A stretch of DNA of 64,000 nucleotides. It comes from Lepidodermella squamata. Lineage: Eukaryota; Animalia; Gastrotricha. The stretch spans positions 4,650,001 to 4,714,000 of the forward strand of contig JBLDXI010000009.1 in assembly GCA_047495785.1 (NCBI GenBank), given 5' to 3'. The notes beneath the pieces were generated by a model. That model was not told the DNA's origin, did no database searches, and worked only from the letters and a program-made list of their open reading frames with translations. Both the position numbers and the translations under genes were made by a program. Of the stretch, positions 42,073 through 56,146 are shown piece after piece; the first letter of the stretch is position 1; every line of letters begins with the position of its first letter.

Positions 42073-45000
42073 TCAATGGTTGGGGTAGGGGTTCAATTGA
42101 CTGCTACCACTTTGTTTCTTCGGACCGTACATTCCACGCACTGTTCCGAACGGCAAGCTGCCAGGCTGCTTCTTACTAAGGAACTGAATACCCAAGATCG
42201 GTATCTGACCGCGAGGTTTCTGTATTGGATAGTCCGCTCGTTGCTTTTCGATAGGAGTGTCCTTTTTATTAACAGGCTTGCCCTTGAAAAAAACGTCAGG
42301 AGTAGCCGGTTTCTTCGATAATCGGAGCCGCGAAGCATGCAATTTCATGTCAATCCAATGCATTAGGCAGCGTTCGCGTTTCTCTATTCTTTCATAGGTT
42401 TCATCCGCAACTTTTTTCTCAACGAATCGCGAGAAACGATGGATCGAGAGTTCCACTAGAGTGGAATAAAGTAAAAGAGCAATAAAAATTTGCCAAGGTC
42501 TTACATTTTGCTAGATTGCGTTCTCCAACAGGTTTGAAAATTGACGCGATAATTTCCTTCTTCGCGGGAGTTTTAGTAGCAGTGAATTTCAACTCCTCTG
42601 CCATGTAAGTCGACAGTTCGTGGTCCCATTTGGTGTTTTCTTCAACGTTATCTGCAACCTGGCTGTAGGTGACTGATATAATAGTCATGAAGACCTGAAC
42701 AGCCAAAAACATGACAATAGTTGAGTAAGCCATGCAGAAAAGCATGATATAACGCGAGGTAAAGCTCAGAGACATCAGAGACCCAGTTACTCCGATAATA
42801 TTCTGAACAAGGGTCATAATCGAAGCAGTGAATGATTGAAACTCGTCACAAGTTGTGTTCAGGCTCAGATAACCAAGTTCGGCGAAGAGAACGGTGATTA
42901 GGGCGAAAGCGAAGAGGAACGATGACAGGTCGCCCTTGCCCTTAGAGAGTGTTCCCAAGAAGATACACCAGTACTTATTAAAGGTGAGGTGGCGGAAAAA
43001 CAGCAGCATAGTCATGAAAAAAGTGATTCCGTAGAGATTAGCCATTAAAGCTTCCCAGTTGACGAGAAGATCGAAATTTACGAATGAAGTCCTGTCGGTC
43101 TGGAGTCGAGTAACAGCTTTCATCACAACGAGAATTCGAGCTATGAACAATCCAACAATCGCAAGAGCGATTAGAATCTGACAGAGTTCCAGCAAATTCC
43201 AACCATCCTTTCGGAACTTCGTGAATCCCTGCTTCTTTATTTTAATAAGGATCTTGATCAGATGCGAGAAAACAAGTAAAATCCAGATGCCTTGAATGGC
43301 GAAAATGAAGATCGAACTGGCACCGATGTATTGATACAACTGGAGAGGATACATTCTCGCATGATAAGTCATGCCTCCAGCACTCAAAGCTTCGAACACC
43401 ACTTTCACCGCGATGAACAAGTTGACCTGAGCATTGAAGAGGACCATGTCGACAAACAGGACTGATGTTGCGCTGTCAAGCCATCTTCTCGACTGAAGCC
43501 CAGCAACGAAAGCTTGAGCTTTCACAAGATTCACGGGCAGGTCGACGTAATATCCACCACTGGTGTAGGTTGCTTGCCAGCCCGAGTAGGGAATTCCACT
43601 GTCTTCTCGATGGATCCAAGGGGCCTGCTCGGTCGTGACATTCTCTGGAACCCAGGCAACAGCATCAGTGTTAAAAGTCCAATTGAAGTTCGAGAACTGC
43701 CGTGCTTCGGTGTCCGCGCCCACTCCAAGTTGGCCAACGTATTGATTCTGGCACTTAGTAGTATTGACGACAAGCAGATCAGTGAATTTCTTGACGTATT
43801 GAGGGACCACCGAAGTCTCTAACAAACAGGGGGCTGAAATAAGGTATCATTAAATTGAGGTCATTTGAAATGAAGCTAGATTACCTGAGCGGACTCGTTG
43901 TTGCCTCAAGCGAACGGGCCCGAGAACTACAACATCGTGATTAAGAACCTGATAGATGTTCTTCGCGTTGAATCTCAAGCCCTTGCTTAACTGGTTAGCA
44001 GTGAAAAACTGCGGTAGAAGGTTGTTGTTTAGCCACGAATAAATTTGGCTGTAGTCATTAACCACGCTCATCTGGGCTACGTTAGGCATTTCTATCAATG
44101 GCTTCAAATCTCCAATTTGTTGATACGCCAGCCTGTTCTGCGTTGCAGCGATCACAATAGCAAATGCAACGACGTAAATGATGTGGTGGAAAATTCCGCC
44201 GATGATGTTCCGCATGCGCTTGAAGAGCTCCGTTTTCTTAGTGGAGCTGTTCTTCGAGAATGCCATCTTGCCAATGTCGAGGCCGTCGTCAGGCAGAGAC
44301 AACAGAGTTGAACTGCAGACGGAGAGCAATGCGACTTTGACTGTTTGGATGAGAACCATGTCCTGAACAACGCTCATGACCATTCCACTGAGCCACTGCA
44401 ACGATTTCTCTTTGCCCCACATCAGGCTGTACATGACGATGAAGAAGGACGAGGCTCCAACACAACCAGCGACCACTGGAAGTTAAATAAATTCAAAAAT
44501 GGAAGCAATAAGTTGATCAACTTACAAATCCATGCGATGATAGCGCAATAGTACGGGAGCTGGATTGGCTTCTTTTCTACAGCGCCGCAATCTCTTCGCT
44601 GGTATCCCAAGGCCACATTGAAAATAGTTGTGTATTGGCTATTTTCAGCTGATCGGCGGCGAATTCGCTTGAAAATAAAGGCCATTATTGCAGTTGGAGG
44701 GATGACGATAACGCATCCGATGAAGCTTGTGTAGACTGTAAACCACGACAGGCGGAAGAATCCTCCGATATTGACGCCAACTCGGGGTGATTTACTCTCT
44801 TTCCCGTAGAACATAGCATTAACCAGCATGGCCATGAAGAGGGCGCTGACGACACAAGCCAGCCGTTCGCATCTGGTCCAGTTACTTGGAAGAGGACGCC
44901 TCGTGATGGATAACCATGGATGAGAGCTGAACAAACCAACTCGAGAATGAACGCTGACCAAGTACTTGAAGCCTTTGATCTCGTCTTCCGTTGCGAGTTC

Positions 45001-48000
45001 TTTAAAGTTCATATCACCGCTTTTCATCAGAGACTTGATCAAGAAAACGAACTTCTGCCCCTTCTCAATGTCGACAATGACAACTTTATCTATCTGTACC
45101 TGAAGCGGTTTGCTGCCGTGGGGCGCTCTATATCGGCTGTGGAGTCTAATTTCGATTGCCTCGATATGACCGATAGGCAGAGTTGTGGTCATCATAAAAT
45201 TAGCCGGTCGTCTCCCATCGAAATTTGAATCTCTCTCGCAATCTTCAAGGACGCGCCAGTTCGTATCGCTGATATCACCATAAGCTCGTAGCAGAACTAC
45301 GGGCTTCAAATGATGGTTTTTGACGCCAAAGTGATCGACGGAAACGAGATATTTGCGCGTCTGGTACGGCTTGTTGCTTTTTAGTGGCATAAATGCCCAT
45401 TCCTTGATGTCAAGCTTGTCAAATCGCCAAACGACTATCGCTCCGATGATGAAGAACACTACGGCAGCAACTTGAAACCCGAGAACGAAAGCGTTGTCCG
45501 ATACAAGCGCAGCGAAATTAGCGAATATATCAGAGAATTCGATGGTGTTAGGTGAGATCACAAGATCTGCTCCGAAATCGCCAAAGTAAGATGATTTGAA
45601 AGTAACCGCAGATTCAGTCGAACTGGGATCAAGCTCGAAATCCTCATCTGAGCTCGTTGCATCGCGTCTTTTCCTTGAATTAGTGTTTCTTGCCTTGGCA
45701 AATCCCACTTTGAGATGGTAACCGTAACATCGTTGCAATTCGCAAGAATCGGCTGGCAAGTCGTCCATAGTTGAGAAGCTGGAGAAGTCTTTCTTCGTAT
45801 AAACATGCATCTTGAATGAGACATTTGCGCTTGAAGAGAGTCCTTGCATTTCAACGAAATCTAGCAATGCCGCCTGCGGAATTACAACTCTCAATTCGAC
45901 ATCAGTATTGTAGCTTGACTTGAGTTCTCCAAGACTGGCATTAACACTTGTGTTGACACTGGTTTGAGTGACAAATAGAGACCAGGTATAGCTCTGGACC
46001 GTTGGAGTGCTATTCAACGACAGATACGCAGTATAGTTGTAATGGATGACAGGAAATATCAGCACAAAATCGCCAGAATTCGAAGAAACAGGGAAAATGG
46101 CTAGTGATCCCATTGTATCAGCATTTTTACTAACGTCGCATGTAATCTTGCTTACGTCACACTGAGCGTCAGACTTTTGTATGGTTAGCATAGCTGCTCG
46201 GGAAACAATCGGTTTTCCAGTAATTTTAGTCTGATAGCCTTTCTTGAGAACTAGCTCTTTCTTCTGATACAGAACTTTGACCGAAATAGTCGGCATATTA
46301 AAAGGCTGCTTTGGGTCGAGAACATTGACGATATAGGCCGTAACAACAACGGTTACGGTGTCAGATTCTTTAATTGAGACTCCTGAGGCTTTGGAATCGA
46401 TAAATTCTGTGGCCGATGTCGTATTAGGAAAAACTACGGCCGCGTGAATGGTCTCCAGTTTGAAATTGGGCAGCTTTTTGGCAGCTATTACGCTTAAAGC
46501 TACCGAGAAGAATTTGCCACTGAATGTGAAGTTTTTCCCCGTTTTCGCATTAGCTTCGACCATTTTCAGCATGACGTCAATCATGTCATTGAAATTTTGG
46601 TAAAGTTTTGATGACTGCAAAAATGACAGTATTATGGCTAAATAGAGATTGTACTGAACGATTTTCACGTGCCTCATCTGTTGATAATGCAGCTTTAGGG
46701 CTGGGTGTCGTTGTCGCGGTTGGATCTGTATTGCATTTGGAGTTTTTATCATTGAGGTTAAGCGATAATGGGTTGCTCGTTTCTTCGGTTGTAGTGACTG
46801 ATTCAGACACTGCGAACATGACGGAACTTGCTGCTGTAGCGTATGCTCCTGTGATATTTGCTACAACTTCCGGGGCCATCTGACTCGCCAGTTCAGCATA
46901 TTTCGCCATTATAGGGCCCAAGTCTGCGATGAATGCTGTAGAAGACACAGCTAGAGCTGTGGTATTCTCTGAGGAGCTGATGCGCATTGCAGCCTCAACA
47001 GCTAAAGCACTGAATGGAGTGGCTGCTACTATCAAAGTCTGGGATGGCATTGATGCTATGAAAGAGATCGAAACGGCAGTTGCCGAAGCTGTTTCGTTCC
47101 TCTTCTCCGAGCAGTCTTTGCCGGTCCAACTTCCAGTACAGATGCAAACGTTAGGCTGTGCACAAATGCCTCCATTTTTACACTCCCCGATGTTGGAACA
47201 GGATGCTATCTCGCAAAGATCATTTTTCTTATTTATGTTAGATAAGATCAAACTTACGTAGAGCGCACCTAGTTCCATTCCAACCAGATGCACAACTGCA
47301 TATGTTGATACCGATGCATGAGCCTCCATTGTAGCAAGATCCTAGGCTTGAACAATCAACATTTGGAATTTCACATCGCGTTCCGCGCCATTTGCTAGGG
47401 CATGTGCAGTTATTAGGCGCTGAACAAGTGCCGTTGTTCAAACAGCCACCAATCGATGAACAGTTCGCTAATCAATAAGAGCATAATTCAAATGGAAAAC
47501 TGATTTAGGACAACTAGGAATCCCAGAATCCCCCTCCTCAAGTCAACACACGCTTTCCCATTCGATGGAAAATAAATAGGTAAAATCCCATTTTCCAATT
47601 ATTTCCGGTCAAAACAAAATACAGCTATACCGAACTAACCGGTTGTGCAATCCAGCCCCGTCCAGCCTGGTGCGCATGTACAAATGTTCGGCTCTGTGCA
47701 AGTGCCACCATTGGCGCAGTTTCCAACAGCAGAACAGTCCACTATGAATTGATGGTATAGGATGAAAGGTTTTAAAAAAAATATGAAAGTTACAAGTGTC
47801 GCATGTGGGATCCTTCCAGCCAGATGTGCAGTTGCACGTATTCGGGGCGACACATGTGCCACCATTCGAGCAAAGGCCTGTTGTAGCCGAGCAGCTAGCT
47901 GTGAAATCAATTGCATGAAATATGAATTAGGAATCAATACAGATCAATCGCATTCTTACGAGTGCCACAGTCTACATCGCGCCATCCTGCTGTGCAATTG

Positions 48001-51000
48001 CATACGTCAGGGCTACTACATGTTGCTCCATTTTTGCAACCCCCAACGCCATCGCAGATAGCTGGAAACCCATTCAGTTTTTCTAATATAATTTCGACAA
48101 TCATACTTACGGGTTGAGCAGTCAGACCCTGACCAGCCAGCATCGCATTTGCAGCTGCCAGGCTGGTCGCAAAATCCGTGCGAGCTACAGTTGGACAGCG
48201 CCGAGCAATCAGCTAGGTGAAACATAGTCTTAGCAATTCAGATTCATATTGGGATGGCGAAAACTTGCCAATGGAGCAATTCGCGCCAATCCAATCATTA
48301 AAACACTCGCATGTGTTCGGTAAGTAACAATGGCCATTGTTTTGACAACCACCGATAGGAGAGCAATCAGCTGAGGACAATCTTGGCTATATCACGATTT
48401 TTCACGCGTATATTTCATTGAACTTACGGATGCAATCGCCGACGTTTCCTTCCCACTGCTTTGAGCTCGCGCAAGTCAAGGTTGCGTATTCTAGGCCAGT
48501 ATCATGGAAAACATAGCCCGGCGTGTCGCAACGATATTCCCAAACAATGCCTCGTATGTTTCGCAGCTCAGGCACTACTGTTGTAAAGTTATTGGTGGTG
48601 TTCGGGAAAACTGGAGGATCAGTACAACGACTAGAGGTGCAACTATGCACGGCACCAGTTACAGAGCCATTAGGAGTGCAAATTTTCGTGAGATTTCCCG
48701 AATTTAGCTCGAAATTATCATCGCATTCGTATGTGATGGTAAATGTTCCGCCATTGTTTGTAACAGTGGCGATATGCGAATTCGACCCGGTGGTATCTGG
48801 CAGCAAGCCGCATATCCCGCGGCAGTCAATTGGATCACCCATCCAAAAATTTGTGGTCGAATTGCATGTTAGTACAGACCAGTCTTGATCAGTCAGTGTA
48901 TTTTTGTAGTACGGATAGTTTTTGCACGTGTAATTTACTGACATGACAGTTGGCATTCCAATTATCTCAATCAAAGTGTTTGCCACACCTGGTGGTGGTC
49001 CGCAGTCGGCCGAGACGTGGCTAAGAAGCTCATTGCGATAGTAAGTATCCGCCACGCTGTTGACAGTTCCTTCGCCAAACCTGCAGATAGAGTTTCTTAA
49101 GCTGCAAGACTTGACGCGGCGATTGTATACGAAAAGATTGCAGACAAATGTATTATATGTCGTGCATTTAGTCATGCAAAGCTCTGGGCTGGAGATGCTA
49201 TTCAGATTGATGGATGCTCCACCACTGGTGCATTCGTAGTTTTGAGCCTTAATGAACTTCCCCCTCGGCACGATTCGGCGTATCTTCATCTCAGTGCGAA
49301 CTAGAGGCGTCGTAGTTTGCCAATATATGTTCATGAATCCTTGAGCTTGGGCGCCATACGGATTATTTAAATTGCTTTGAACCGCAGTTTGATTGCACGG
49401 CGAAGCGAGCCACCAACCACCCATGCTACAAGAATCCACAATGAAAGGATTATCTTTGAGAGGGCCTAGTGAATCTGCCATGGTTGAATCAGCGCTGTAA
49501 CCTGCAATACCTAGTCTGCTAGTAGCTCCTGAGAGATAGAAGTTGCTATACAGTGCATAGCCCCACGTGTTTGCCGTTCCGACTTGAACCAGCAGCTCGT
49601 AGTCTCCAGCCTGTGTCATGGCTCTGATGTTGGCGTTACCTAGCCAATAGTTAGCTAATGGATCGCCAAATCCGGCTTCATAAGCAGCCAAGTCTTGCGC
49701 AAAAGTCTGATTGCCATCTACACGCCGTTGGATCACCGTCCAGCCACCGCCCATCGTATTCTGATCGCAATACGCCGCGAAACTGCCCACTGTTGTCTCA
49801 TTCAGCGTGAATACGCCCGATTCACTGGGAAACCCCATGGCTGAGTTGTAATCCTGGATAGAACTGCAATCGTATGGCAATGGTCGAGCTAAATGATAGA
49901 TTTGAAGTCTAATGCGTCTAAGCTCGTAGAGGTGATCAACTTACGATTGCACGACAGTGGACTGCCGGAATATACCCAAGGGCCCACAATTTGCACCCTC
50001 TCTTCGCTGCCATTCACTGGGTAGTACTTTCTGTTGCATTCGTGCCTCACCATCCCGTACTCAGCGGAATTCAAATTTATCGTTGTAGCATTGGGAACGT
50101 TCTTAATGTTAGCTAAATAATGGTAGTTGTAGCATAATTTGAAGACATATTATCTATGAGCTCTTACGATATTTTTTCCGTTGAATTAACATTTTGATTG
50201 ATTTCACAGCCAAAGCGCCCCATTTTAAAGTCGCATTAACACCGCTCGAAGACATTTTGTTATTCAAATTAGAATCGAAGCTACAATCGCTTGGAAACCA
50301 CCAGCCTCCTGTGAATCCGTAAGGAGTAAAACACGAGGATGCTGGGCCGTGATCTGACGTCGAAAATTGCTGATAGTTATGCTTGGCTGACAGCATATCA
50401 CCAGCAGTGCCTTGGTAATTACTGACGAATAGCCTGTAACCATCCTCCTCGTTTCCCACTTGGAAATCGCCGTAAAATGCCCGCAGCTCTGTATTGTCTT
50501 GCAAGATAATTATGATTGCCAACTGATAGGCACTATCTTTGGTCAATTTGTACAGGATCTCGTTGCCTGTGAATACTTTGTTCACTCTATTCAGAAAGTT
50601 ATCAATAACTTACCGATCCAAAAATCCTTCGTAAGTGCGAATTGCTGAGCAGTAAATCCATTCTTGTAGTCCAGCCAGTTCCTGTTGAAGGATGTCGTAT
50701 TGAAATACTGCTGCTGGATAACCTAAGAAACATCATTGGATAATTAAATGATTAGATTCAGATTCAAGATTGCCCATGTAAAATTTATAGAAGGAGTGAT
50801 GAGTGATCCCTCAAAATTTCAAAAATTTGTTTTGCCTAAGACAGTCAAAAAAGAGGTAGCCTTGATTCATATAAACTTACGATCCATCCTGTCCATCCTG
50901 TGACGTAGTTAAGTGGATCACAGACAACCTGTAGAGGCCCTACCGACCGATGAAAAATCCAAAATACATTGCTGATATTGGGATTGCCGAAAAATATCTC

Positions 51001-54000
51001 CACGCAGTCCGATTCTTTGGGGCTCGCTAATACAATTCAGCTATTCAGAATGTTAATTGCGTTTAGTAAAGTATTACTGGATCTTATCATCATAAGACTT
51101 GAGGCTAGGGATGTGTTTCTGCCCTTCCAGGTGCTCCAGAATAGCCCCCTCTCCCATGAGTTTGCGCCTACAATTCCATTCATGTTAGCATCAGAGCAAT
51201 CAGGATTGACTGAGTCCGCGTTTGTTGGCACTTTGAACCACCACGCGCCTGGTCGTTTCGTAGCACATGTGCGACCTTTAGGTTGATCGTATGCCTGGAA
51301 TGGTTGGTTATTCGAAGTCGCCATGGAATCACCCTGATCATCCCCATTCATCGCGGAAATTGATAGCGTGTAGTTGGTTGTGTCCAACAGTGAAAATCCT
51401 GTATAAACTGCCGATCGCTGGTCCCCTGTAGAGTCTTCCAAAACAATGATTAGCATATAGTTCAGGCTAGTAACAGCCGCATTTGTGAGTTGATAGATGA
51501 TCGAGTTGCCGATGTAATGCGAGCCATTGGGGTTTCCGAACCCAGCTTCGTAGTCAGCCCATGTTTTATTGAAGTCCAATCCATCATTTTTGTTGCGTTG
51601 AATCACAGTAAAGCCACCACTGTGGGCTACCATTTCACAGAAAACAGATACTGGCCCAGAAGATCCAATCGGATGAATTTGGTATACACCGCTCGGGGCG
51701 TGAGCATTGCTTGCAAGAATGTCATCGCAATCTAATGGCTTTGGGTTACCTTGCGCTGAAAGCCGCGCGATAAGATGTAGAAAACCAAACTAAGTGACAT
51801 GAAGCTAAACTAACTCGGTAAGGCGTCCTGTGGTTTGTTCCTTCGAATCATCATTTTCGTCTTCGTCATGCCAACGTATTCGCTTTTGAACGTATTGTAA
51901 ATTGGCATTTGCCCCAATGCAGTCGCGCCGTATAATCTAATTAATAATGATCATAATTGTTTTCATGAAATCTGACATCCCCACACCTACTTACCCATTA
52001 AAGTTGACAGACTGGCAAGATTTATACCTGCAAAATATGGATACGCCGATTATCAATTGAAAACTTGATGGCAGTGCGCGAAGAAGGATTCTCGAACTAA
52101 GGCTATTTTTGGGCAAAGATATATGACCGAAGGTTCTCCTGTGGTTTTTGGGGGGTTTTACACCTTGGCCTTGAAACTCGGGGTTTCACTACCTCGGTAC
52201 TTCGCTCACTGCATGATGGTGCGAAATCTCTCAAAATCAACAATGATGAAAGCGGAAAAAATGGAGAAGGACTAGATCAGAATATGAAGACCCAAAATGG
52301 GTACTTAAAGGGTCAAGACTTACCACCAGGCACCTTTGAATGTAACTGAGCAGTTACCCCAGATCGAATAGTCCTGATCATATGTACTAAAGGCGTTATC
52401 AAAGTGGTACGTCATTGCATCTCCTGTCGAAAGAGATTAGGAAAAGAGAGGCATAGCAAATTCTCTACTATGCTTTTAACAAACCAGCGTTTCCACCCAA
52501 ATAGCCACCAGATCTGAGTCTGTATTTATCAGTTTCATCTTCAACGTAGAAGTCCCTATACATAGCGGCGCCATGACTGTCATCAGGTGCCACCATATAA
52601 AGTCCAAGGACGCTATTGTAGTTCAGCGCAGTCAATCGGCGAATGTTATCGTTTCCCAGCCAGAAATTTGTGCTAATGTTCCCAAAACCAGCTTTATAAT
52701 CAGCCCAACCACGGTAAAAATTTGTTGAGCCATCGATGCGCTTCTGGAATACAGTCCAGCCGCCTCCGATACTTGTCATGTCGCAATAAACTTGCATTGA
52801 TGGAAATGAAGGGGGATAGATCGTGTAAACCCCATCGGGTGATGTCCGGTCTCGCATCAGGATATCCTCGCAATCCACGGGTGGCATGTTCCATATGTCT
52901 AAATTGGATATAGCTTGATGAATTTTTATATTTTAAACCATTTGATTCTCACCGCAGTTTGAACCGTAACTGCTCTTGTAGCCAACAGGGCACGTGCAGG
53001 TTGACGCACATTGTCCTATGCCCGACGTGACGCAACCAGTGTGAGGAAGGCATATCCAAATTTTAACAGTCATGGCAAAATTGATGCTCGTGTAATTCTT
53101 TGGCCACAAGTGCAGTCCTGAAGTGCGGATATTCGGGCATAGTCTGGATGTGACAGAACTGGCACCGTTGTACCCAGGAAATAGCTAAAGAAGCAGCATT
53201 GGAATTACGACAATCACCCGAAAGTTTATGCTAACCTTCAAAGGTGACGACCAGTCATTCTGATCAGTTAAGACGGGATAGTAGAAGTTGCCTAGCCTAG
53301 CCTGCTTCACGTAGAAGGAAATTGCGTAGGAAGTAACATAGCCCGCATAAAGGGTTCCTTTCCCAACTTCGATTGTGGATACCGTGAACTCGTATGGCAA
53401 ATTTACAGTCAAAAATAGCCTGTTGTCGGGGTTCACCGGAGCCCAGCCAAGTGGCGTTACAGCATAAGAGCCGTTACCGGTCGACCCAACGAGGCCACAC
53501 CACGACATTGCTGTCAGTTCTATCTTGTCACATCCTACCGAAAGGCTGGTATAACCTCGCCTGTGCTAGGAAATCAGGTTACTTACGGGAAGAAACTGAA
53601 AAAATTAGGTTGCTATATGAATCAAATTTGCTATTGAAAGTCTAATCGGGGTACCTGTTTCGCAGTATCTGCCGCTAACTCCGAACGGACAGCTGCATTG
53701 AGTCACCCAGCCCACAATGATGCAAGTACCGCCATTTGAACACCACGGATAATCAACGCCGTTCGAAGAGCATATGCTCGTTCCTTTGTGTTCCTCGTCT
53801 AATTTTACATCGCTTCCCCGTCAAATGTAGCCTACCTGTCAATGAGCAAGCTGGCCCAGTATAAGGAGCAACACAGTAGCATAGCCCATTCGTACACGTT
53901 CCACCGTTTGCGCACTCTGAGTTTTGTGTACAAACTGCATTAGAAAAATAATCGGCTAAATTCGTTTCAATATCATTTGTTGACTTCTCACGTTTCGAGG

Positions 54001-56146
54001 TTTGCGTGTCACAAATAGCTCCCATCCAAGTAGGCGCACACGAACAACTGTCAGGCGCCGAACATGTGCCACCATTTTGACACGGTGTATGGCAAACGGC
54101 TATTTGTTAGCAATATCAATACCATGCTATAAACTACTAAAATCTGAAAAGAGATTACGAGTGGTGCAGTTGGATCCCTGCCATTGTCCGGTACAAGAAC
54201 AAGTAGAAGGCCCTGTGCAAGTTCCCCCATTCGAGCATCCTCCAGGGCACGTGAAGGTACCACAAGTTGGACCTGTCCAACCGGTGGGGCATGAACAGGT
54301 GTTTGGGGCCACGCAGGTGCCTCCATTTTGGCAAGGAGACGAGCATATTGCTAAAAATGACACAATTTGTCTCAAAATTAACTCCATTTTCGCCTTTTCT
54401 CACGAGTAGTGCATCGAGTTCCCGTCCAGCTCGCGGTGCAGTTGCAGTTCAACTGGGCATTACAGGTTCCACCATTGGAGCATGCAGGCGAGCAGACAGG
54501 AGTGGCACAAGTTGGACCCGTCCAACCCACAGGGCAGGAACAGTTGTTTGGGGCCACGCAGGTGCCTCCATTCTGGCAAGGAGACGAGCATACAGCTGAA
54601 AAATGAAGCCATTGGCCCAAAAATTAACCACAGTTTTCGCCTTTTCTCACGAGTAGTGCATCGAGTTCCCGTCCAGCTCGCTGTGCAGTTGCATGTTAAC
54701 TGGGCATTACAGGTTCCACCATTGGAGCATACAGGCGAGCAGACAGGAGTGGCACAAGTTGGACCCGTCCAACCCACAGGGCAGGAACAGTTGTTTGGGG
54801 CCACGCAGGTGCCTCCATTCTGGCAAGGAGACGAGCATACAGCTGAAAAATGAAGCCATTGGCCCAAAAATTAACCACAGTTTTCGCCTTTTCTCACGAG
54901 TAGTGCATCGAGTTCCCGTCCAGCTCGCGGTGCAGTTGCAGTTCAACTGGGCATTACAGGTTCCACCATTGGAGCATACAGGCGAGCAGACAGGAGTGGC
55001 ACAAGTTGGACCCGTCCAACCCACAGGGCAGGAACAGTTGTTTGGGGCCACGCAGGTGCCTCCATTCTGGCAAGGAGACGAGCATATAGCTGAAAAAAGT
55101 AAAAGTCTCAAAATTGACTCCATTTTTTGGATTTTCCTACGAGTCGTGCATCGTGAACCCGTCCAGTTCGCTGTGCAGTTGCATGTTAACTGGGCGTTAC
55201 AGGTTCCACCATTGGAGCATGCAGGCGAGCAGACAGGAGTGGCACAAGTTGGACCAGTCCAATTTGCTGGACATGAGCACGTGTTCGGCGCCGTGCAGCT
55301 CCCGCCATTCAAGCACGGACTCGAACAAACGGCTGATAAACAAGCCACAATATTATATTTTACAACGCTCACACTGTAAAGGAGGTGGGTTACGAGGACG
55401 TAACAAATATCGAAAAGGGTAACGTTGAAAATTTAAAAATCTACCCAGTGCAGGCTCATTATTGCACCAAAACTCCGCTCACGATCGCTCAGAACTTTAA
55501 CGAAACCATTCTGGTGATTTCAGCTTTAAGTTACCTGATGTACACGCTGACCCAGTCCATCCTGCAGTGCAGTTGCATGTTAACTGTGAAGTGCAGGTAC
55601 CATTGTTTTGGCAGGGTGTCGAACAATTGTCTGTGATAATGAGTAATAACGAAAAATCTGAGTGTGGAATGCTGAGCTAACATAACTCGCAGAAGCGCCC
55701 AGTGTAAGTAGGAGGGCAACGGCATGAAGCGCCGTTACTACTTGGTGAGCAGGTTCCACCGTTTTTACATTCGGGAAGGTTGACAGTATTTGGCTCGCAA
55801 AATGGCCCGTCTGCATGATGCCTTGATAAAATTAAAATTAAAACGAAAACTTTCACTAACTATTAAGCGAGCAGTCAGAGTTTCCCCACGGCACGGGGCA
55901 ATGACATAATCGCGCGTCTGGCGCCATGGCGCCGGGGCCGGGTCTCCTCGTGGTGGTTGTCCCCGGCCCAGGTTGCGTCATGGCGAACATACACTTTCCC
56001 CCATTTCTGCAATCACTATCAGAAGCGCACGACGGAGGACACACGGCTCCTGCGAAAGCAAAAAAAGTTATCCAAGTGATTTTTTTCTATAAATTACCAG
56101 GAGGTCCAGCGGCGAGCAATATCAAAGTTACGCACAGAATATACAT
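42073..56146 (-). CDS. Giant polycystin-1-like (PKD1L) protein: signal peptide, ~25 EGF, F5/8-C, four fibrinogen-C, PAN, four Sushi, degenerate GAIN, TM1, PLAT, polycystin channel region; roughly 3,900 aa (estimate)
   Basis: About 30 exons from [14 protein letters not shown] (56146) to TGA (42073); every junction I checked keeps frame (not all were checked). FReD motifs [22 protein letters not shown] signatures PNTIEF before TM1, [54 protein letters not shown]. Confidence 0.85.
52072..52211. mobile_element. 140-bp hAT-like MITE inside a polycystin intron
   Basis: Ends CAGTGCGCGAAG and CTTCGCTCACTG (11/12 inverted match); flanks CTTGATGG and CATGATGG (7/8, consistent with an 8-bp TSD). Confidence 0.7.
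54387..55333 (-). repeat. Tandem exon+intron repeat, four units, period 247/247/~243 bp, each encoding two EGF domains
   Basis: CGCCTTTTCTCACGAGTAGTGCATCG recurs at 54391, 54638 and 54885; two introns are identical; a fourth, more diverged unit at ~55139-55333. Confidence 0.95.

Follow-up and report, generated by a model that had tools for sequence, protein, structure and literature searches.

What becomes of a receptor that is built to cut itself when the residues that make the cut are gone? Self-cleavage at the G-protein-coupled receptor proteolysis site (GPS) is regarded as central to the maturation and force sensing of polycystin-1 and the adhesion G-protein-coupled receptors (GPCRs), and mutations in PKD1 that block the cut cause kidney disease. 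The question is raised by a polycystin-1-like gene on the minus strand of a 64,000-nucleotide stretch of the genome of the gastrotrich Lepidodermella squamata (assembly GCA_047495785.1, contig JBLDXI010000009.1, positions 4,650,001 to 4,714,000), which is called the window below. A first-pass annotation of this stretch had proposed that autoproteolysis has been replaced here by cleavage at an R-K-R-R site by a proprotein convertase. In our analysis, we put the probability at about 0.6 that the motif R-x-K/R-R is cut by an outside furin-type protease, and that a two-piece receptor is thus made by a convertase instead of by GPS chemistry. Nucleotide positions are those of the window, amino acid (aa) numbers such as 360-363 are those of the open reading frame (ORF), and “model” residues follow the numbering of an AlphaFold2 (AF2) model.

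All the residues quoted in the first-pass annotation are present in one open 776-aa frame (minus strand, 44422-46752). It had read Y-F-G in place of the H-L-T triad, with the GPS cysteines and tryptophans gone and the stalk downstream of the triad kept, and the alignments with polycystin-1 and with 11 canonical paralogs agree with it. In the HMMER alignment to human polycystin-1 (PDB chain 6a70_B), G-D-F-G-A-D-L falls on T-A-F-G-A-S-L, which puts a glycine on the cleavage threonine, and 12 residues of the window protein are paired with T-A-F-G-A-S-L-F-V-P-P-S. The same genome encodes at least 11 canonical paralogs with the pattern C..W..W..GC.VG...C-x-C-[NT]-H-L-T-[ST]-F-G, and a tblastn comparison lays S-Y-F-G-D-F-G on their x-H-L-T-x-F-G in the same register. 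In other words, F-K-S-S-Y-F-G (45580-45600) stands where C-x-C-x-H-L-T is expected, with Y-F-G itself at 45580-45588 (aa 389-391): H is replaced by Y, L by F, T by G, and C-x-C by F-x-S. The Trp-Trp (W..W) hairpin is absent from the GAIN-like domain of the window protein. What is found is a GAIN fold without GPS chemistry, that is, without the two disulfides, the Trp residues, and the H-L-T/S triad. Because substitutions have removed the His, Leu, and Thr as well as both adjacent cysteines, the juxtamembrane GAIN domain of this receptor is, judging from its residues, no longer able to cut itself. The retained stalk, a tethered-agonist-like peptide of 15 residues (45535-45579), aligns with A-F-G-A-S-L-F-V-P-P-S-H-V-R-F of polycystin-1, and its residues G348, G351, P358, and I361 are invariant in an alignment of 37 sequences (the window protein, 30 paralogs, and six proteins from environmental assemblies; 28-87% identity, 371 columns).

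Another candidate for the GPS was considered and rejected. A C-x3-H-L-K (C-Y-G-Y-H-L-K) in a 10-residue stretch further upstream could be taken as a true GPS remnant, parted from its Thr by an inserted loop; the alignments with polycystin-1 and the canonical paralogs put the triad on Y-F-G instead. The H-L of this Y-G-Y-H-L strand is not the GPS H-L, since MAFFT places the strand before the W..W hairpin of relatives from the brachiopod Lingula. The strand, Y-G-Y-H-L-K-V-G-F (45700-45726; predicted as a strand at model residues 300-305), is conserved in the 37 sequences, with G301 invariant and Y302 and H303 at least 90% conserved. It is preceded by a C-x4-C pair (45727-45744), of which the first Cys is invariant in the 37 sequences and the second is F, S, A, or V in several paralogs, leaving the invariant Cys apparently unpaired.

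The R-K-R-R (45664-45675, aa 360-363) lies 25 residues upstream of the dead triad and fits the furin/proprotein-convertase consensus R-x-K/R-R, with the predicted cut after R363. The annotation had set its conservation in orthologs as a check, and R-x-[KR]-R is conserved in 37/37 sequences. Only 19 of the 371 columns are invariant, and the P4 and P1 arginines occupy two of them; P2 is K or R in every sequence, P3 varies freely (K, G, R, S, Y, L, or T), and P1' is mostly Asp; R-K-R-R followed by D is also the processing site of the IGF-1 receptor. At each of the two invariant arginines, five codon types are in use, with AGR and CGN codons both represented, and therefore the selection is on the amino acid and not on the DNA. 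Around the motif, the loop varies in length and sequence among the paralogs, and the neighbours are polar or acidic. The alignment presents a convertase consensus that is under purifying selection in a predicted flexible loop. Within the same genome, 32 of 32 triad-less copies carry the motif, and in 11 of 11 canonical H-L-T paralogs the 70-120 aa upstream of the GPS contain neither R-x-[KR]-R nor a dibasic pair. As for the enzymes, the proprotein-convertase P domain (P_proprotein, PF01483) has 10 matches over the cut-off in the genome, eight of them at E<1e-17, and Peptidase_S8 adjoins the P domain in both loci inspected; at least eight furin-type proprotein convertases are encoded.

Could such a motif be a product of chance, or lie in a pseudogene or an unrecognised intron? 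The suspicion is prompted by stop codons near the motif region in some paralogs (L017 and L031), and it is now largely refuted and very improbable. A random 86-aa stretch of the same composition carries R-x-[KR]-R in about 2% of shuffles, against 37/37 at one alignment position, and all 37 keep the motif through synonymous codon turnover. The window copy is open for 776 codons, and the borders of the large exon (44526-46614) have been identified: it is bounded by an AG acceptor (46615-46616) and a GT donor (44524-44525), and the matches of paralogs start and stop at these same borders. Twenty-eight paralogs keep the frame open and conserved across the motif, and the relatives from environmental assemblies carry the motif within uninterrupted ORFs. 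In L017 and L031, the stops fall within short AT-rich, intron-like inserts after the motif, not over it.

These inserts, in L017 (1069-1638; contig C46) and L031 (1099-1680; contig C9, about 206 kb from the window), resemble small introns. The former is inside the stalk, between F-G-A-D and L-L-I-S-P-N, and the latter is in the loop right after R-K-K-R; the motif stays exonic in both. They suggest recent intron gain or decay in some copies.

Is the surrounding domain still a GAIN domain? The annotation had asked for a model of the stalk region, and the fold was indeed found. The GAIN-like ectodomain (45535-46614; a helical part and then a beta-sandwich) was modelled with AF2 on the 37-sequence alignment, with a mean local confidence (pLDDT) of 80 and a pTM of 0.78. 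In an exhaustive structural comparison (VIA) with 48,161 PDB representatives, the top eight matches were all adhesion-GPCR GAIN domains (CD97, CELSR1, GPR126, GPR110, latrophilin-3 (LPHN3), BAI3, and GPR97), with Z values of 7.9-10.7, 149-175 residues aligned, and a root-mean-square deviation of about 4 Å. These Z values are just moderately above the background of 7-8 of the tool, and the matches are uniform; they span model residues 1-358, stalk strand included. Foldseek against the PDB gave a weak result, with cellulase matches at TM 0.1 and BAI3 as the sole GAIN domain at rank 12 (probability 0.98, TM 0.24). The model indicates that the GAIN fold, a helical subdomain and a beta-sandwich before the first transmembrane helix (TM1), is retained. 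The annotation had also placed R-K-R-R in a polar loop, and the motif does lie in a predicted disordered loop of 15 residues (45649-45693; model 311-325), which is the only internal stretch of at least three residues with pLDDT <50; the other low stretch is the C-terminal end. The strands that follow (model 329-331, 340-344, 348-350, and 355-357) are modelled in the GAIN sandwich, with pLDDT 77-86 for residues 331-350. The loop lies between confident strands, N-terminal to TM1 (45427-45489; a hydrophobic run of 21 residues that lines up with TM1 of polycystin-1 in 6a70_B), in a domain that is extracellular in all relatives, its predicted exposure being judged by pLDDT.

On the reading that we prefer, a furin-type proprotein convertase would cut after R363 in the secretory pathway. 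The N-terminal fragment would consist of the EGF and fibrinogen domains and most of the GAIN domain, and the membrane fragment would start at D364 and carry the last few GAIN strands (four predicted) and the stalk. The ectodomain stub left on the membrane fragment (45490-45663) has 58 aa and no Cys. Because the strands after the site stay in the sandwich and no cysteine follows the site, the two fragments would be held together non-covalently, by strand packing. The result would be a two-piece, force-separable architecture, as GPS autoproteolysis gives to PKD1 and the adhesion GPCRs, reached in the manner of the S1 cut of Notch. The evidence from motif and loop would be identical if the convertase cut served to shed the lectin-like EGF/fibrinogen ectodomain in soluble form, or to activate or inactivate the receptor once and irreversibly, with no stable two-piece receptor, and the lack of a cysteine after the site leaves nothing covalent between the fragments. 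We regard this as rather unlikely: the strands after the site are modelled with good confidence as integral parts of the GAIN sandwich, such packing normally keeps GAIN fragments together, and the near-invariant stalk suggests a role that still depends on the surrounding domain.

Does the arrangement extend to other genomes? In 1.8 billion representatives, searched exhaustively with phmmer, 1010 relatives were found; 407 library proteins were at E<=1e-10, and the named ones among these were PKD1-like. Among the best 150 of the 1010, five cover the pre-stalk region, and the four of these that were inspected, all from environmental assemblies, have the motif at the same place (4/4). The closest relative outside the genome (L051; ENA ERZ27333047, contig k141_63249) is 44% identical over an uninterrupted ORF of 1632 codons, and shows that a related, unsequenced animal was in the ERZ27333047 sample; its contig of 14.6 kb also carries ankyrin-repeat and Abi/SH3 genes as neighbours. 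The next relatives are PKD1-like proteins of Lingula, scallops, abalone, an octopod, the annelid Dimorphilus, and the planarian Schmidtea (PKD1L-2). The dead signature F-K-S-x-[FY]-F-G (as in F-K-S-N-F-F-G) recurs in PKD1L proteins of brachiopods, molluscs, annelids, and flatworms; in many of these, the furin motif is missing or sits in another loop.

To compare the two states, 106 non-redundant PKD1-like representatives were classed into 64 with an intact H-[LM]-[TS] and 42 without the triad, and R-x-K/R-R was scored within 86 residues upstream. It is present in 15 of the 42 triad-less proteins, against none of the 64 intact ones, with about one expected from shuffles; in the downstream membrane region, the numbers do not differ (8/41 triad-less, 12/64 intact). 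In a maximum-likelihood tree, the triad-less proteins form clade A (28 tips, including the window protein; support 95) and clade B (12 molluscan tips; support 97), plus two single proteins; the triad state changes four times on this tree and the motif state about 10 times. In the MAFFT alignment, the loop of the window family falls where the Lingula proteins have their W..W hairpin, and the motifs of Lingula, Ylistrum, Haliotis, and clade B are one loop further upstream. We had considered positional homology of the furin loop between the window family and the brachiopod and molluscan proteins, and the alignment, which shows different loops, does not support it. A model of Lingula XP_013397107.1 (pLDDT 83.5; GAIN matches at Z 11-16.3 against a background of 8.4) has an unmistakable GAIN fold and places R-V-K-R in its only internal disordered loop.

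The clade B proteins, which are PKD1/LOV-1-like, have their own features. They keep the four GPS cysteines and the Trp residues, H-L-T is replaced by P-G-N, P-A-L, V-G-D, T-G-N, or T-E-L, and R-x-K/R-R lies 62-80 residues upstream in a Ser/Thr-rich linker. Members include P0024, P0071, P0074, P0113, P0102, and P0134 (Mizuhopecten, Lottia, Saccostrea, Sinanodonta, and Potamilus).

Because the dead signature is shared with spiralian PKD1L proteins, many of them without the motif or with the motif elsewhere, the loss of self-cleavage is probably older than the R-K-R-R loop of the window family, and “replaced” is best understood as a sequence of events. The claim of the first-pass annotation is kept in part. 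The GPS is dead in a domain that keeps its fold and its stalk, the motif is conserved, and the enzymes are encoded; of the refuting conditions named there, a lack of conservation and an unrecognised intron were both found not to hold, the cut itself stays a prediction, and the idea of a single swap has to be given up. Because the motifs sit in different loops in different lineages, the basic sites seem to have arisen more than once. It is tempting to go further and speculate that in spiralian animals, after the loss of GAIN autoproteolysis, PKD1-like receptors gained convertase sites again and again, in whichever loop of the C-terminal GAIN sandwich happens to be exposed, with sites that differ in place among the L. 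squamata family, its brachiopod, gastropod, and bivalve relatives, and the second molluscan clade that keeps the GPS cysteines. We offer this wider view tentatively, and it may well prove wrong.

The same survey bears on another explanation, that the basic motif is kept for a non-proteolytic role (for instance in binding glycosaminoglycans or a ligand, or in contacting a partner subunit) and that the receptor works uncleaved. Many triad-less PKD1L proteins lack the motif, and uncleaved GAIN receptors exist: human ADGRB2 (BAI2) is uncut at its GPS and has a furin site that is non-canonical, weak, and partly used, between the CUB and TSP domains (bioRxiv 10.1101/2023.03.12.532270). ADGRB2 resembles the window protein in keeping a GAIN fold without a GPS cut and in being furin-processed; in the window protein, however, the predicted site follows the canonical consensus, does not vary, and sits in the C-terminal part of the GAIN sandwich, whereas that of ADGRB2 is far from the GAIN domain. 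What speaks against a binding role is that P4 R, P2 K/R, and P1 R with a free P3 are the exact convertase consensus and not a general basic patch, that the neighbours are polar or acidic and variable in a loop of varying length, and that the motif recurs in different loops across lineages, a pattern more in keeping with the use of any exposed loop than with a fixed binding surface. We judge this explanation improbable, a little more so than ectodomain shedding.

Several points weigh against convertase cleavage into a two-piece receptor. They are as follows: (i) several adhesion GPCRs work uncleaved; (ii) the motif is missing from 27 of the 42 triad-less representatives, planarian PKD1L-2 and the annelid proteins among them, and therefore such a cut is not obligatory for a polycystin with a dead GPS; (iii) the cross-species contrast comes from two large triad-less clades and two single proteins, and the Fisher p of 1.5e-7 for triad against motif is descriptive only and not phylogenetically valid; (iv) an independent-pairs test of a dead GPS with a furin motif finds only 3-4 pairs and has no power; (v) low pLDDT suggests that the loop is exposed without proving it; and (vi) the non-covalent association of the fragments after the cut is a prediction of the structural model.

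In comparison with polycystin-1 and sea-urchin REJ3, in which GPS autoproteolysis occurs at H-L^T, the window protein is alike in the position of the domain before TM1, the stalk F-G-A-x-L..P-N, the TM1-PLAT-TM and channel parts, and the GAIN fold. It differs in that the triad and C-x-C are replaced, the W..W hairpin is missing, and a convertase motif is found in an internal GAIN loop. The predicted new N-terminus would be 27 residues before the canonical one, leaving several strands (four predicted) and not one on the membrane fragment, and the ectodomain consists of EGF and fibrinogen-C domains instead of PKD repeats and REJ. In Notch, furin makes the S1 cut in an exposed loop of the juxtamembrane heterodimerisation (HD) domain, and the halves stay joined non-covalently until force separates them. 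The likeness to Notch is in the proposed mechanism only; the sequences are unrelated, and so are the folds (SEA-like in the HD domain of Notch, as against GAIN). The ectodomain of fibrocystin/polyductin (PKHD1), also a cilia- and cyst-related receptor, is processed by a proprotein convertase; it is a member of another protein family and lacks a GAIN domain.

The nearest named relatives are the spiralian PKD1L proteins with the dead signature, which belong to the clade of the window protein: Lingula anatina XP_013397107.1 and XP_013384714.1, Ylistrum balloti XP_060074442.1, those of Haliotis and Argonauta, and Schmidtea mediterranea PKD1L-2 (AKN21725.1). Unlike the window protein, they keep the W..W hairpin, and Schmidtea and Dimorphilus have no basic motif. 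Planarian pkd1L-2 is needed for mechanosensory behaviour, in a paper that is silent on the GPS (PMC11448475), and a survey of sea-urchin REJ proteins takes cleavage at the GPS for granted in all PKD1 members (PMC1934368). Full-text literature searches turned up no account of a polycystin or a GAIN domain in which a convertase site takes the place of the GPS.

If the cleavage is real, the fragment architecture is separable from the chemistry that makes it: here would be a natural family that keeps the fold and the stalk, in which the cut has apparently been handed to a secretory-pathway protease elsewhere in the domain. It would also supply ready-made variants with which to ask how many strands must be pulled out before the stalk is exposed. 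Should the tentative wider view of repeated acquisition hold as well, selection would be keeping the two-fragment, force-separable architecture and not the self-cleavage chemistry, and variants with longer, multi-strand tethered peptides would provide a test of the tethered-agonist model. The finding also points to an entire branch of mechanosensory PKD1L receptors in spiralians, planarian pkd1L-2 among them, whose GPS is dead by its residues.

It remains to describe the rest of the gene. The large exon encodes the GAIN-like domain, the furin-type loop, the dead GPS, the stalk, TM1, a PLAT-like region, and the next transmembrane helices. Pfam searches covered each exon or ORF separately. On the 776-aa exon they gave no match even at E<=10, the GPS, REJ, and PLAT models all missing the family; phmmer against the PDB found polycystin-1 (6a70_B, E 9.6e-12), with residues 348-660 of the query aligned to 33-337 of the chain, from the stalk onward. 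The downstream exons (42419-44475, minus strand) encode a polycystin domain and a cation-channel region (Polycystin_dom, 8e-21 and 2.6e-5; PKD_channel, 6.5e-22). The upstream exons (46617-55372, minus strand; mapped without the gene start) encode four fibrinogen-C domains, matched by Fibrinogen_C in four ORFs at 1e-15 to 4e-40, and many EGF repeats, matched by EGF families in other ORFs. Because of the channel domains in the downstream exons and the alignment with polycystin-1 from the stalk onward, the gene is identified as a polycystin-1-like receptor-channel, whose lectin-type ectodomain is unusual.

In the genome (121 Mb, 151 contigs), this tandemly expanded family has at least 35 copies, mostly on one other contig (C24), where two dense tandem arrays lie at 4.17-4.64 Mb and 2.54-2.60 Mb. 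Because the window copy, on contig C9, is 84-88% identical to a dozen paralogs of the C24 arrays, it looks like a recent dispersed duplicate. On the 3' side of the large exon, an AT-rich GT...AG intron of 50 nucleotides (44476-44525, minus strand) is followed by the ORF in which the frame resumes. This intron and the one upstream of 46615 are AT-rich and only about 40-50 nucleotides in length, in keeping with a very compact animal genome.

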